From Bugula neritina (lineage: Eukaryota > Animalia > Bryozoa): a DNA stretch of 64,000 nucleotides. This document shows positions 25,101 through 56,416 of this stretch, piece after piece. The notes beneath the pieces were generated by a model. That model had not been told where the DNA came from and did not search any database. It worked only from the letters and a program-made list of their open reading frames with translations. A program made the translations under genes and the position numbers. The stretch's first letter is position 1. Each line of letters begins with the position of its first letter. The stretch covers positions 1,178,001-1,242,000 of the forward strand of contig OZ037766.1 of NCBI GenBank assembly GCA_964035545.1, written 5' to 3'.

Positions 25101-28100
25101 TATTGCAAATTTCCTTATGCTTAGTATAGATGCAGTAAAATTGTGCTATATTTACGCAGACATTGATGAGTGTCAAACAGACAATGGGAGATGTTCACAT
25201 ATTTGTGTTAATGCAGATGGGTTTCACAGCTGTAAATGTCCACCTTACCTGTACCTTTCTGAGGATAATGTTACCTGTACAGGTACTAGCCTTTGTTTAT
25301 TATACAAATATTTTGTACTGTAAACTCTGAAGAGTTACAATAAATGTTTAGAATTGTATATCAAACATGCAGCATATAAATTATATGTAAATGAGCTGTA
25401 TCTAGACTGCCAGCTAACATGAATAACTAGCTAAAATTAGCCAATATTGAATCTTTGTTATAATTTCTCCAAACACAAAATAAAGTGCCTAGTTTACAAG
25501 AGGTTTGTGATAGTCTATCTACAGTCAGTTTAATGCTATGAGTCAAATGAATGGGACATTTGGTAATTGATTAAGCTATCAAGTTTCTAGCTAAAATGGA
25601 GTACCACTTTTTTTTCCTAGCCAGCGGAACCGTTGTTGATTGCTCTTCTCCTGATGAAATGAAAATAACTCTGACAAAGGAAGCAGTATTTTTTCTCCCA
25701 GAATTACTGACTTTGATAGACCCAAGCTGTGTTTCCAGCTCAAACTCTACTCATGTGTGGCTGCAGACAGCTTATGAGAGTTGTCAAACATCAAGAAAAG
25801 TAAATTATTGTGCATATAAAACTGATATTTGAATTTTTCTTGCACTACTGCGTGTGCCATCTTAGTTTTTATTGCATTGAAATGGCTTTGTATTGTTTCA
25901 AAGCATTGTTATTTTAATACCCTTGCAGGTCGTAAACAATACCATAGTTTTTTCCAACACTGTTTTGAATTCTGAGTCATCTGCAAGTTTTATCCAATTC
26001 TACGACTCTATTTACATCCCTTTCAAATGTGTATTTGCTGCTACAAGTAATGTCACTCAAGTAACTCCTCAAGTTCCACGACTTATCATGAGACTTGACA
26101 GTCAAGGTCTTCTTCAAGGAAGGTATATATACTACGACTACAATAATTCATTTTTGTGCAAATTCTGTACTAGCTACAGACTCTTAGATGGGTAACAGTT
26201 TAAAAGTAGTGTGAAGTGCACAAGTCTTGAATTATTTTTCAGTAGGCCTATTGACTTTTTCTCTAGCAATATAATATTAATATATTATTAGTTACTGGAA
26301 TAAGTTTTTTATATCTTATTTTACTGATTGCACCATAAGTAAAATATTTTAACACTATAGCCTGAACCAAACACAAGATACTTTCTAATTTAATTTTATG
26401 TTATCAATTCTTGTTATCATTATATCAATTATCATAATATTTTAATATAGAAAAAAGTCAAGCTTTATTTTTAAAGCTAAAATGTTTATCTAATTGTACA
26501 CCATCTACTTTGTAAATAGTTTATAGGTCAACATATAATTATGTAAACTTTTCATTATATATTTGCTACAGCTCCTTACATAAATAATCAAAAGGTAAAA
26601 GTCTACAACTACTAATTTATTATAGCATTGACTTACTAAAATAAAGCAATAGGTTTTTAGGCTAACAAAAAAAATCTAAATTAATAATAAACTTTAACAA
26701 CAAAAATTATTTCAAGCTAAAGTGGCAACTTGAAAGTTTAAAACTTAAAAACTATTTTTCTAATAAAAATAATGCAGTGCTATTTTTATAATATTTTATG
26801 TAAATGAAGCACAAAAATTGCTTCAATCTTTTTTTATTTTAAACAGCTTAAGAGCTTCTCATAGCCAATCAAATAATAGCTCACTTCCAACAGTAATTGA
26901 GTTCAATCAAAGACAGGAAATCCATGTAAAGCTGGAGTCGAGTGAAGCTAGCCTTAGGTTTGTTCCAGAATATTGCACTGTTTCTTCAGAACAAAAAAAT
27001 ACTTCAGGACTGAAAGTCATTCTACTCGGGTAAGATAAATAAAATACTATGATTTAGTAACACTTTCCCTTTAGCTTATTTCATAAAAATGTTTTAATAT
27101 CTTATTTTACCTTACTTACTGTTTTGTACATATCTATGCATTGATTATATATATATATATATATATATATATATATATATATATATATATATATATATAT
27201 ATATATATATATATATATATATATGTTATAGCATGACATTGCATAAAGCTAAAAGATGTAATGGCTTTTTCATGTTAGCTTCAGCGCTTATTTTGTTTAT
27301 TTATATACAGCTATATCAGCTTTTCTGTGCAAGTTAATATATAAGGTGGTAACACTTCTACTGTTTTCATTGTAAATTATTTTATGATCAATACACCTGT
27401 TTGAAACACAACAGATTTTGGCGACGAGGGTAGGACCAGCTTCAAGGATTTTCAACTGATCATTTATTTTTACTTTACGCGGTTATCATCAGAATCTTCA
27501 AATCTTCAAAGACTCTTCATTTAGACATACTTCAAAAATTATGTCTACACCTACAGATCAACTGATAGCTTTGCTAACCCAGCAGTTGGCACAGCAAAAG
27601 GAACAGATGGATTTGCAGAAGCAACAGATAGAACAGCAAGAAGCAAGGATGGAACAGCAAGAAGCAAGGATGAAACAGCAGCAAACAGAAAATCGGGAGC
27701 TGATTCAACTACTCACCCAGTCAGCAGAGAAGAAAACCCCAGCGTCAACCCCGAATTTTGCAGCATTTGATCCAAGTACAGAACTATGGACTCAATATTC
27801 AGCAAGATTCACCACCTTCATTGGAGCCAACTCAATCGCAGAAGATAAAATACCACAAGTATTTTTGACAAACCAATCAACAGCCATCTACAAGCAGTTG
27901 AGTGATTGGGCGGAGCAGCAGACACCAAAGAAGGAGATCAACAAACTGACGATGGATGAAGTTAACAACTACATGATGACACAATATAACCCAAGGACAT
28001 TCATCATCAGAGAAAGATACAGATTTTGGCACGACATGAAAAGGAAGCCAGGGGAGACTATTCCAGAACTAGCAGCTAGGATTCGACATGACGCAACAAC

Positions 28101-54600: not shown

Positions 54601-56416
54601 AATAAACCACTGTGCTGTGAGTATCGCCATTTAAGGCATTTGAAATTACTAAATATTATTATGTTTTAATATACATATTATATTATTTTTATGACAACAA
54701 ACAAAATAGCTTTTATAATAATTATAGATCATCTATTTTTAGAGCAAAATCAACCATGCACTGTGTGAGCATACTTTCATGGCATTCAAAATGATTCTAC
54801 ATTATGTTTCTTATTATTACAGACTAGATGTGTTCACTGATAAAGAGTTCAGAAACCTGTTGGAAACTGACAGTGCTATCAGTATCCATGAAGGAACCAG
54901 ACTGTTTGGAGAACTGGGAATTTCAACCAGCACCTCAGATCTGAGAGTTTCACCAAAAGACTGCAAGCTGACTCCAACAAGCAATGCTAATGACCCAGCT
55001 GCTCAAATGGTTATCCAGAATGGGTAATACTTGTAGTTTCACATATCATATAATACATACAAAAATACCAATACCTCAGCAGCAAATTTCCTTGTTTTCA
55101 TTTTGATAATAGTAATACCATTACATCATTTTTTACTTTTGGCATACCAGTATATAAGTAGAAAGCTTGAAGTTTAATATATCTGCATTGTATGAAACTA
55201 TTACGTACAGCAGTTACAGTTTCTTCTATATACCACTAGAAAGTAAAGACAATATTTTAATGCATGATATCAAGGCAGAAGATATTAAATTATGTCTTAG
55301 TTGAAGATTTTCAAATCTCTCTAAGTGTACATTATGAAATTTACCCCAAAATTTAAAGCAGTATAGATGGAAGTAAACTAAATAAAGCATTTGTTTACTC
55401 AACATTTGACTCATATAAAGTCAAAGTCAAGTAATAAATTGTGCTTGCCAAAGTTTAATTAAAACTAATATTGGTCATCATTTTATCTATCTATAATGAC
55501 TGATGGCTATATAGAAACACTATTTTAATAATATATTATACAGAAGCAAAAAATGCTGCCTTGTTCACCACAGCACCTTAACATCTGTTCTGGTGGTTTT
55601 AGATGTCGGACTGGATACTTGGCTACGGTACTGTCCAGTAACAAATTTCGTATGCTTTCAACTAGTTTTGTATCTCATACATCAAAGAACAGCTACCTTC
55701 ATTGTTCCGTGAACATCTGTGACCCTGATAATATGTCAAGGTAAATGTAGCTTCTAGCAAGATGAGCTGTAACTAAAGGTGACATTAATTAACATGACTG
55801 ATTCTTAAGTTTTATTGGATTAAGTCTTAAAAAAATTGATTGATTGATTGATTGATAAACTATTTTATCAATCAAAATCAATATAATATTATAATCATGC
55901 CAAGTTCAAGCACTTTGATTTTTAACAGTAACTGTTCTTTTTTCAAATATTTCATGCTATTAGTTTGTTAATGAAGTAACTAATATCTTAAAATCAGTGA
56001 CTGCATTAATCAGCTAAACAATCGGTAAAATGTTATTTTTATGAAATGGTAGAAGAATTTAACGTTTTGTGTTTCACACTAACACACAATTTTCTGTTCC
56101 ACTTTTCTAGTATTATTTTCTCAGAATTTACCAAGAGGAAATTATTTAATAATTGCTAGCAAAGCTCTCGATGATACTAGTTTTATAAAATATAGGCATA
56201 AACTTTATGCTTTGAGATAAGCGTGCATGGTCAATATGCACTTTGCAGTGTTTCTAATGAGTTATCAGTAAAACTCAATAAATATTGCCTACAATTTCGT
56301 TAAACTCCTACAAATAGTTTGTACTATCAACCTACCAACTCTGATGTTTCTCTGCTGTTTGTAGATGTGAGAGAAATTGTCCTCCCCTGTCAGACATTGG
56401 GAATACTCTTGGTTAA
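42612..56416 (+). CDS. Gene 3: SRCR-EGF-EGF-ZP-FReD-ZP paralog, 19 exons, +1 frameshift in a C16 run of exon 3 (null allele or homopolymer error)
   Basis: Exons 42612-42683, 43422-43486, 44008-44133, 44586-44705, 46430(or 46427)-46552, 47037-47156, 47269-47447, 49808-50004, 50341-50523, 50928-51103, 51657-51875, 52326-52457, 52604-52726, 53085-53213, 53563-53801, 54194-54399, 54823-55023, 55603-55740, 56365-56416. All other exons are open with intact splice sites. Exon 3 is 126 nt where 3n+2 is required, giving TAG at 44072-44074. Confidence 0.85.
44750..45075. repeat. Degenerate TACACTGTATA-type tandem repeat after exon 4 of gene 3
   Basis: Repeated ACACTGTATA/ATTCTACATAC units; a shorter homologous tract follows exon 4 of gene 1 (~10170-10325). 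Confidence 0.8.
47561..48340. mobile_element. piggyBac-like MITE in gene 3 intron 7
   Basis: TTAA|CCCAATTCACTGCTCCAATTGTACGTTAC ... GTAACATACAATTAGGGCAGTGAATTGGG. The right-hand TTAA is not preserved. Confidence 0.6.
47585..47815. mobile_element. ~230-bp fold-back (hairpin) element nested in the left end of the piggyBac-like MITE
   Basis: ATAAACTGCATCAACTGCTAGCA pairs with TGCTAGCAGTTGATGCAGTTTAT; imperfect pairing extends over nearly the whole length. Confidence 0.7.
48460..48845. repeat. Inverted-repeat element with internal ~15-bp subrepeats
   Basis: CATGGCCTAGTCTGGAG (~48551) pairs with CTCCAAACTAGGCCATG (~48694-48710); flanked by AAAATAGACA-type repeats on the left and GTCTATTTT-type repeats on the right. 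Confidence 0.55.
51156..51478 (-). repeat. Partial tandem dimer (~225-bp period) carrying two tRNA-like sequences, antisense in gene 3 intron 10
   Basis: Reverse strand TCCCCGTGGTGTAATGGTTAGCACACTTGCTTGCAAGCCAGAGGTGTCAGGTTCGACTC (A and B boxes) present twice. Stems are imperfect, so this is a SINE/pseudo-tRNA rather than a tRNA gene. Confidence 0.7.
52027..52210. repeat. ~92-bp tandem duplication in gene 3 intron 11
   Basis: CCTTTGAATAAATCATA...GGGTAAAAAAATT occurs twice back to back. Confidence 0.9.

Follow-up and report, generated by a model that had tools for sequence, protein, structure and literature searches.

Five old paralogs clustered in the genome of Bugula neritina have very probably become mosaics of one another through repeated interlocus gene conversion of short, for the most part exon-sized, tracts. 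The DNA analyzed, hereafter the window, is a 64,000-nucleotide stretch of contig OZ037766.1 that holds three of these genes, which we call A, B, and C (genes 1, 2, and 3 of the original prediction). At the level of sequence, interlocus gene conversion among these FReD-ZP paralogs is well supported, because the genes switch partners along their length, the shared sites cluster non-randomly, dS spreads widely among exons, and A and B share a 223-nt identity across intron 15, as against mostly unalignable introns elsewhere in B. We regard the case as ordinary gene conversion and a clean example of it, not as a proven diversity-generating design.

The gene cluster and its predicted product

Genes A, B, and C each have an unbroken reading frame of 19 exons, with introns of the GT-AG type; in our models of exons 5 to 19, every junction is AG/GT and the frame is open in all three. 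Their layout is the following.

10570 to 16260, plus strand: gene A, exons 5 to 19, placed from splice boundaries, the open frame, and exon-wise Pfam matches; predicted domains EGF, EGF, ZP1 (exons 7 to 10), FReD (exons 11 to 14), ZP2 (exons 15 to 18), and a short tail (exon 19)
20422 to 38243, plus strand: gene B, with exons 7 to 19 at 25621 to 38243
20422 to 20571, 22601 to 22849, and 23765 to 23992, plus strand: SRCR pieces of gene B
24150 to 24389, plus strand: EGF open reading frame of gene B
25160 to 25282, plus strand: second EGF exon of gene B
43314 to 56474, plus strand: gene C, with SRCR pieces from 43314 and exons 5 to 19 at 46430 to 56474

The stop codon of gene A falls inside exon 19, and the SRCR part is encoded further upstream, its last piece at 10000 to 10140. 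Gene A is outside the span given in the original prediction (26010 to 56416), yet it was among the three genes compared there. An LTR retrotransposon sits inside intron 9 of gene B, and an orphan truncated copy of exon 17 is found at 18745 to 18920.

The three-gene comparison captured a mosaic among A, B, and C but was incomplete, as two further paralogs, D and E, lie outside the window, on the minus strand just upstream of it. The family thus has five members, all with canonical splice sites and unbroken frames, and a span of 110 kb contains all of these similar copies. A and D form a palindromic pair, in which D is the inverted partner. The introns give the backbone (((D,A),E),C),B, the introns of gene B being mostly unalignable with the others. 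The gene copies are old.

All five products are, as predicted from sequence, probably secreted proteins composed of an SRCR domain, two or three EGF domains, a ZP module, a FReD, and a second ZP module. Pfam profile searches were run exon by exon only. Exon 11 alone matched PF00147 (Fibrinogen_C) with 37.8 bits (cut-off 22; profile positions 11 to 78), exon 12 matched the same profile with 19 bits (positions 71 to 124), and exon 13 aligned weakly with fibrinogen chains in their Ca-loop region (E = 0.004 to 0.07). For exon 14, where the ligand pocket would be expected, no similarity to any solved FReD was detected; the exon retains a GWWY..C motif and is, by our estimate, about 25 to 30 residues shorter than in a usual FReD. 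Because of this lack of similarity, the term "binding domain" is itself an assumption. In ZP1, sub-threshold matches appeared in the right order (exon 7, ZP-N, 23.8 bits; exon 9, ZP-C, 18.3 bits). In ZP2, where the order is likewise as expected, exon 15 matched ZP-N with a sub-threshold 22.0 bits, exon 17 matched ZP-C with 25.2 bits (cut-off 24.6), and exon 18 matched ZP-C with a sub-threshold 16.5 bits. Upstream of the FReD, the exon-wise matches were to SRCR, EGF, and ZP only, with no IgSF domain. The predicted C terminus, 16 residues into exon 19, contains neither a hydrophobic stretch nor a dibasic site, and no recognizable furin site or membrane anchor follows the last ZP-C of the predicted protein. 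There may be an alternative last exon that differs from the predicted end in exon 19.

Searching exon 15 against 1.84 billion proteins returned no full-length relative, only one fragment at 94% identity and a few fragments of about 100 amino acids at 40 to 51%; matches of a multi-stretch repeat type were judged to be noise. The contig carrying the 94% fragment (L029) harbors A/D/E-type exons 15 to 17 at about 90% identity and is uninformative on mosaics. A contig with a second exon 15 fragment (L030) gave no blastn match to the family. A search for proteins homologous to the exon 12 open reading frame found nothing, and neither the invariant 21-mer of exon 13 nor a 24-mer of exon 16 had an exact match in metagenome contigs. 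Nothing specific on the SRCR-EGF-ZP-FReD-ZP combination was found in the literature. The predicted order, in which two ZP modules enclose a fibrinogen-like domain and SRCR and EGF domains precede them, is an unusual architecture for a secreted protein, here in a poorly studied invertebrate.

Partner switching along the genes

Alignments were anchored on exons, as fast MAFFT alignment of whole regions misaligned the 5' exons of B against the retrotransposon. Joined coding sequences were used for alignment and dN/dS, and clustering tests of the GENECONV and PHI type were written for this analysis.

The nearest relative was found to change along the genes at the places named in the original prediction, the peptide landmarks lie where it had put them, and every grouping that it claimed agrees with the per-exon identities. 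In exons 5 to 9, A and C are 92 to 99% identical, versus 59 to 76% to B. Exon 11 groups A with B (90%, versus 77 to 79% for the other pairs), exon 12 groups A with C (86%, versus 62 to 64%), and exon 13 groups B with C (97%, versus 77%). For exon 16, the identities of A-B, A-C, and B-C are 90, 95, and 85%, and exon 18 again groups A with B (93%, versus 80 to 81%). Late intron 18 and the 3' UTR group B with C (79%). The main shared tracts are listed below.

46995 to 50543, plus strand: 5' block of C, exons 6 to 9 and parts of introns 5 to 8, 92 to 96% identical to A 10986 to 12245
33799 to 34007, plus strand: 3' part of B exon 11, A/D/E-like, 93.8% identical to A 13047 to 13255; C is divergent
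35020 to 35181, plus strand: B exon 13 and 33 nt of intron, 91% identical to C 52571 to 52732 (exon alone, 97%)
53085 to 53213, plus strand: C exon 14, which switches type internally and resembles A, D, and E from 53177
14740 to 15221, plus strand: exon 15-intron 15-exon 16 tract of A, 96.5% identical to B 35966 to 36447
35966 to 36447, plus strand: copy of this tract in B
54191 to 55055, plus strand: C exon 16 (54191 to 54408) and exon 17 with short flanks (54801 to 55055), A-like, 94%
37294 to 37441, plus strand: B exon 18, A/D/E-like, 92.6% identical to A 15772 to 15919; C is divergent (about 80%)
37940 to 38408, plus strand: late intron 18, exon 19, and 3' UTR of B, alignable with C 56174 to 56646 (79%)

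The similarity of the C 5' block to A comes in three pieces, broken by C-specific intron DNA. The island predicted in exon 8 was recovered as 65 nt of B (26034 to 26098, plus strand) that differ from A 11818 to 11882 by one mismatch, versus 66% identity in the remaining exon. This island is nearly invariant in C, D, and E too, and for such very short islands, nucleotide-level constraint and micro-conversion are inseparable. For exon 13, E shares the B/C type, and the A and D cassette differs by a 15-nt deletion and a 3-nt insertion; the 3' half of the exon is nearly invariant across the five genes. As had been predicted, C exon 14 resembles B as far as 53175 and A from 53177 onward, and a spliced contig of an independent run spans the entire exon with 5 mismatches. 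The intron between C exons 16 and 17 is unalignable with that of A.

The tract shared by A and B begins 38 nt into exon 15, covers the entire intron 15 (identical at 101 of 101 positions), and stops within exon 16, 26 nt short of its end. Its core is the 223-nt exact match (A 14932 to 15154, B 36158 to 36380). Intron 15 is common to A, D, and E. Introns 14 and 16 of B, which flank the tract, align to nothing, and B is therefore the likely recipient.

In the five-gene matrix, B is the outlier in exons 7 to 9 and 12, C in exons 11 and 18, and the A/D pair in exon 13. Judged on these five sequences, the pattern is one of which copy retains a divergent cassette at each exon. Each gene harbors a different combination of exon 11 to 14 (FReD) types. 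Within the shared tracts, the identity extends to synonymous and intron sites; a lack of synonymous-site identity was what the original prediction had named as its refutation.

We propose that the transfers took place as interlocus conversion during double-strand-break repair, in which non-reciprocal transfers of DNA between copies would overwrite stretches of about 60 to 500 bases. The introns have diverged beyond recognition, leaving homology mainly in exons, and tracts therefore begin and end in or near exons, their ends presumably limited by homology. Concerted evolution would then act on each exon almost independently of the others, so that the nearest relative would change from exon to exon and every gene would keep divergent cassettes of its own. 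Among the tracts, only that of exon 15, intron 15, and exon 16 points to a donor side and a recipient.

Clustering of shared sites and alternative origins of the mosaic

In exons 10 to 19, 226 adjacent informative sites had the same pattern, compared to 123 ± 9 after permutation (z of about 11). With third codon positions only, the numbers were 104 and 62 ± 6 (z of about 7). Longest-concordant-run tests gave p < 0.0005 in nine of ten pairs, and the PHI test gave p = 0.004. Per-exon dS varied widely within a pair, from 0 to above 1 (A-B, 0.17 to 2.08; A-C, 0.03 to 1.13), and divergence at 4-fold sites was heterogeneous among exons (A-B, p = 1e-4; A-C, p = 4e-6), varying within one pair from 0/9 to 6/10. 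Among 67 sites at which the exons of A and D differ, 34 have both states among B, C, and E. In AU tests of the 15 unrooted topologies, exon 17 rejected the grouping of A with D, a clade required by exons 10, 13, and 14. The topology (A,D)|E|(B,C) survived in every segment except exon 17, in unrooted tests of low power; since one topology survives nearly all segments, the signal is mostly heterogeneity of divergence and not conflicting splits. GC3, examined as a sign of biased conversion, showed no clear trend.

Penalized segmentation of A, B, and C gave nine robust switches between exons 6 and 19: none in exons 7 to 9 of ZP1, two in exon 10, four in the FReD (600 nt), and three in ZP2 (784 nt). 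The claim that switching is densest inside the FReD was thus not borne out (four of nine; p = 0.17 by length and 0.29 by informative sites, range 0.17 to 0.73). Nor is ZP2 simply homogenized, as had been proposed: it is itself mosaic, with gene-specific patches private to B (3' end of exon 16, 5' end of exon 17) and to C (5' ends of exons 15 and 16, exon 18). In most exons and pairs, dN/dS was 0.1 to 0.45, and it reached about 1.1 to 1.2 in exons 12 and 13, on few sites; with ratios mostly below 1 and the high values on few sites, diversifying selection is unsupported. Among D, A, E, and C, dN was highest in the FReD (0.12 to 0.19, versus 0.02 to 0.08 in the ZP modules). As a description, "most variable domain" therefore holds for the FReD in four of the five copies. 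Of the proposal that gene conversion shuffles a variable head and keeps a stalk constant, the segmental interlocus conversion stands. The head-and-stalk design is unproven, because the FReD has no significant excess of switches, ZP2 is mosaic, and dN/dS is mostly below 1.

These results bear directly on an adaptive account, in which conversion is favored or targeted so as to shuffle FReD cassettes toward new binding specificities and the ZP2 polymerization stalk stays uniform. The high FReD dN, the dN/dS of exons 12 and 13 between cassette types, and the different set of exon 11 to 14 types in each gene are in line with it. So is the finding that half of the A/D differences are variants common to other paralogs, which suggests continuing exchange, as is a transcript contig of another run that matches C exons 14 to 16 and whose preceding 98 letters do not align to C exon 13. 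We nevertheless consider this account unlikely, as switches are no denser in the FReD than expected, ZP2 carries gene-specific patches, overall FReD dN/dS is 0.2 to 0.7, and exon 14, the expected site of the pocket, is unrecognizable as a FReD. Under such an account, the shuffling might still take place in populations, perhaps even within somatic cells.

Chimeric copies could also have been made by unequal crossing-over or duplication of hybrid genes, without short-tract conversion. The genes do lie in tandem and as an inverted pair, the orphan exon 17 copy indicates that the cluster has been rearranged, and a stretch of about 1.7 kb (exons 5 to 9, with introns 6 and 7) sets B apart from D, A, E, and C. 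This 5' grouping could simply follow from the order in which the genes were duplicated. To produce nine alternations within 4 kb, however, many successive crossovers would be required, and most high-identity tracts are bounded on both sides by non-homologous sequence. Indeed, B exons 13 and 18 and C exon 17 have unalignable introns on both sides, the signature of short non-reciprocal patches. We thus hold crossing-over to be a quite improbable source of the mosaic.

An origin without any exchange, through exon-specific mutation rates or constraint, including constraint on synonymous sites, appears very improbable. Most unrooted topology tests fail to reject a single tree, and the five genes hardly vary in the exon 8 island or in the 3' half of exon 13, as this account would have it. 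It is at odds with the neutral intron 15, which is 100% identical between A and B although other introns diverged completely, those of B being mostly unalignable. Furthermore, the similar pair changes between exons, which exon constraint would not bring about, C changes partner within exon 14, and 4-fold divergence differs widely within one pair. An assembly artefact, in which reads of paralogs were joined into chimeric copies, is the least probable of all: the similar copies are closely packed and the region was compared with public runs at the level of assembled contigs, but every gene has its own unalignable introns and insertions between shared tracts, which reads of a few kilobases would place unambiguously, short contigs of the likely source run have 0 mismatches, runs of two other studies carry C-specific introns joined to shared exons as well as the exon 14 junction, and all frames are intact.

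Significance and relation to known systems

The cluster is a well-resolved natural example of gene conversion after intron divergence, with exons as separate units of concerted evolution and old paralogs becoming different combinations of a few exon types. Whole-gene trees of the FReD-ZP family are meaningless unless the genes are split into segments. We think it distinctly doubtful that the cluster is a recognition family (in immunity, gamete recognition, or colony allorecognition) whose exon-sized cassettes of the FReD and adjacent domains are still exchanged, with mosaics differing among individuals and the A/D pair and orphan exon fragments as donors. If that reading were true, SRCR-EGF-ZP-FReD-ZP would be a previously undescribed polymer-forming lectin scaffold, and mosaics that varied from one individual to another would make the cluster a candidate recognition locus.

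The FREPs of Biomphalaria combine IgSF domains with a FReD, and both point mutation and gene conversion are reported as sources of their diversity; somatic diversification was proposed for these snail proteins. They resemble the present family in having a FReD in an invertebrate multigene family with mosaics of the recombination type. However, FREPs have IgSF domains, whereas here there are none and the FReD lies between two ZP modules behind SRCR and EGF; the FREP family has dozens of members and this one five; and, unlike in FREPs, the pocket-forming end of the FReD is unrecognizable here. In domain order, the family is comparable to mucosal glycoproteins of the DMBT1 type (SRCR-...-ZP) and to EGF-ZP proteins such as uromodulin, which are likewise secreted and carry SRCR and/or EGF domains on the N-terminal side of a ZP module. 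The present proteins differ by the absence of CUB, by two ZP modules with a FReD between them, and by the lack of a recognizable furin site or anchor after the last ZP-C.

The clustered immune-type Sp185/333 (SpTransformer) genes of sea urchins are block mosaics attributed to recombination between neighbors (PMC1988830, PMC8634487). Members of both families are mosaics of shared blocks, but those of Sp185/333 are "element patterns" of presence and absence in a single exon of an unrelated protein, whereas here they are homologous exons of a multi-domain gene. In abalone VERL, most ZP-N repeats are homogenized by concerted evolution and the first two diverge under positive selection (summarized in PMC9265791). 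In both cases, concerted evolution keeps one part of a ZP-type protein uniform and another part diverges, but in VERL the repeats belong to one gene and positive selection was demonstrated, whereas here the exchange is between genes.

The cluster is nearest to the interlocus (ectopic) gene conversion and concerted evolution reviewed for clustered paralogs (PMC3924818, PMC3966223). Both involve short non-reciprocal tracts among tandem or inverted paralogs, a mosaic along the gene, and identity at synonymous and intron sites within tracts, with islands of divergence persisting between them. They differ in nothing of kind: here there are five copies, including a palindromic pair, and the tracts are almost entirely exonic because the introns are saturated.

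Gene copies, exon plan and intronic repeats

Comparison of the window with itself revealed three collinear copies of the gene:

~10.5-16.3 kb, + strand: gene A (gene 1 of the original prediction)
~25.1-38.4 kb, + strand: gene B (gene 2)
~46.4-56.6 kb, + strand: gene C (gene 3)

The peptide landmarks of the original prediction sit in A, B and C as described there; gene A falls outside the span it gave (26010-56416).

To model the exons, we aligned conserved open-frame blocks and then chose phase-keeping splice sites common to A, B and C. Exons 5 to 19 were modelled in all three genes, with AG/GT at all junctions and frames open to the stop in exon 19. 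Pfam domains were searched exon by exon, while the joined coding sequences were used in local scripts only.

Pfam domains detected in single exons
SRCR: last piece, 10000-10140
EGF: two calcium-binding EGF exons
First ZP module: ZP-N in exon 7, ZP-C in exon 9
Fibrinogen_C: exons 11 and 12, exon 11 above the Pfam cut-off
Second ZP module (ZP2): ZP-N in exon 15, ZP-C in exons 17 and 18

In the rest of the fibrinogen-related domain (FReD, exons 11 to 14), exon 13 aligned weakly to the calcium-loop region of solved fibrinogen domains; exon 14 matched no solved FReD and retained the GWWY..C motif. Since the SRCR exons of B and C, plus the second EGF exon of B, were recovered in upstream ORFs, A, B and C have the same 19-exon plan. 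A FReD flanked by ZP modules on both sides and preceded by SRCR and EGF was not found in the searchable literature, nor did single-exon searches return this order (SRCR, EGF, ZP, FReD, ZP) among database proteins.

In gene C, a poly-C run (~44030-44074) divides the middle SRCR exon (43931-44225) between two frames, reflecting a homopolymer length error, a polymorphism or a real frameshift. The remainder of gene C is intact and under purifying selection.

Several repeats were observed in the cluster. Intron 9 of gene B harbors an LTR retrotransposon (27224-31950), higher in GC than its surroundings, with one intact 1395-aa ORF (27541-31728) carrying RT, RNase H and integrase domains. Its 190-bp direct repeats (27224-27413, 31761-31950) are 100% identical, suggesting a very recent insertion. 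Intron 10 of gene C contains a very high-copy element (51150-51450; contig depth 100-1000x that of the flanks in 4/4 runs), which is probably a tRNA-derived SINE given the tRNA-like GGGATTCGAACCC motif in loose ends. Gene B also has, in intron 2, a near-perfect tandem array (21662-22773; ~38 units of 29 bp) that ends at the SRCR exon 22601-22849. Long microsatellites of the (TA)n or (TATATG) type occur repeatedly in the cluster, within introns and in the flanks, and also border the retrotransposon on either side (5724-5960, 6654-6912, 9529-9860, 27127-27235, 31948-32260, 34863-34996).

Mosaic structure of genes A, B and C

The nearest relative of each gene had been predicted to switch exon by exon and within exons. 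Per-exon identities reproduced every proposed grouping, and fine alignments showed the island in exon 8, the GEKGKY patch in exon 10, the intron 15 shared by A and B, and the B/C-like 3' end. They also showed that C switches within exon 14 and that its exon 16 has an A-like end. When the 583 informative coding sites of A, B and C were divided by penalised segmentation, 10 robust segments resulted.

Segments of the mosaic (coordinates of gene A)
to 12710: A=C
12711-12771: B=C
12779-13070: A=C
13075-13246: A=B
13380-13671: A=C
13694-14237: B=C
14239-14739: A=C
14740-15095: A=B
15155-15594: A=C
15607-16181: A=B

Pattern sharing by neighbouring informative sites was far above that of permutations, also when the test was restricted to exons 10 to 19 or to third codon positions. 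Between A and B, synonymous divergence was 1.3, 0.9 and 2.1 in exons 7 to 9 and 0.17 to 0.27 in exons 11, 13 and 15 to 18; between A and C, it was 0.03 to 0.17 in exons 7 to 9, 12, 16 and 17 and 0.7 to 1.1 in exons 11, 14 and 18. Differences at 4-fold sites were heterogeneous among exons (A-B, p=1e-4; A-C, p=4e-6). Most introns of B could not be aligned with any other copy; A and B nevertheless have an identical intron 15, within a 223-base exact match running from exon 15 into exon 16. This match sits in a 482-base A-B tract that ends inside both exons, pointing to a short-tract, DNA-level transfer into B. The shared tracts are thus alike at synonymous and intronic sites as well, so that the condition set to refute the original prediction, a lack of synonymous-site identity in these tracts, did not hold, and the overall pattern argues for exchange rather than constraint.

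As a check on the assembly, we compared assembled contigs of public sequencing runs with the region. Contigs of the likely source run gave exact matches, and the C-specific introns 13 and 16 were joined to shared exons in the runs of another study and of other samples, at ~93-95% identity. A spliced contig from a third study (2015 run, probably RNA) joins exons 14, 15 and 16 of C (96%, 91% and 94%; 53085-54295); it confirms the splice junctions between them and contains exon 14 in full, with the switch inside it. The first 98 letters of this contig, in the place of exon 13, did not match exon 13 of C; the source of the contig may be an allele or paralog that carries another exon 13 cassette. 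The contigs of the other samples and the other study differed from the window by ~5-6% in introns 13 and 16 of C (52640-53161, 54368-54840), a sign of either cryptic lineages or a highly diverse population.

The five-gene family

A search of the whole assembly (216 Mb) recovered two additional copies on the same contig (contig 2, where the window occupies 1,178,001-1,242,000), both with complete exon sets, canonical splice sites and open frames:

contig 2 1171072-1182100, minus strand: gene D, directly upstream and reaching window 1-4300; inverted partner of A
contig 2 1134279-1140300, minus strand: gene E, ~40 kb farther upstream than D

Genes D and A are inverted head to head; their exons are 94-100% identical, their introns only 79-97%. 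Intron alignability gave the backbone (((D,A),E),C),B. Across the identity matrix of the five genes, the outlying copy changes with the exon: exons 7 to 9 and 12 set B apart, exons 11 and 18 set C apart, and exon 13 sets A/D apart from B, C and E, which share 96-97% identity there. In exon 10 and in the 5' parts of exons 14 and 15, all five copies diverge. Read against this matrix and backbone, the grouping of A with B in exon 11 reflects a divergent exon 11 retained only by C, and the other groupings read likewise.

Recombination tests on the five genes were significant (PHI, p=0.004; concordant-run tests, all pairs). At 34 of the 67 exon sites that differ between A and D, both states were found among B, C and E, suggesting that exchange went on after the A/D duplication. 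AU tests over all 15 unrooted trees were weaker than the other tests and gave clear conflict only for exon 17 versus exons 10, 13 and 14; the signal is mainly one of unequal divergence rather than of conflicting splits.

At 2.5 kb beyond the downstream end of A there is an orphan truncated copy of exon 17 (18745-18920), made up of ~160 nt of exonic and ~20 nt of intronic sequence. It is >90% identical to the family as far as the truncation point and may be the remnant of a lost copy or a conversion donor.

Head, stalk and mode of exchange

The original prediction was that conversion shuffles the FReD and homogenises ZP2, giving a variable head on a constant stalk. In protein sequence, D, A, E and C do differ from one another more in the FReD than in any other domain. 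The design itself is not established, since only 4 of the 9 switches lie in the FReD, which accounts for a quarter of the coding sequence (p=0.17; p=0.29 for informative sites), ZP2 is itself mosaic, with 3 switches and gene-specific patches, and dN/dS is below 1 nearly everywhere.

The sequences point to ordinary interlocus gene conversion, and the following mechanism is the most likely one for the observed pattern. Homology between old paralogs would survive in exons only, and breaks would be repaired over short tracts templated by paralogous exon copies. A tract would stop where homology is lost, usually 0-30 bases from the exon edge; a longer one could form where the copies already resemble each other across two neighbouring exons and a short intron, as from exon 15 to exon 16. 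The set of copies homogenised with one another would then change from exon to exon.

With low probability, the cluster could be a polymorphic recognition locus. Membership of the FREP family is ruled out because the genes encode no IgSF domains. As analogies, the nearest biological systems are the snail FREPs, the sea urchin Sp185/333 genes and the concerted evolution of the abalone VERL repeats.
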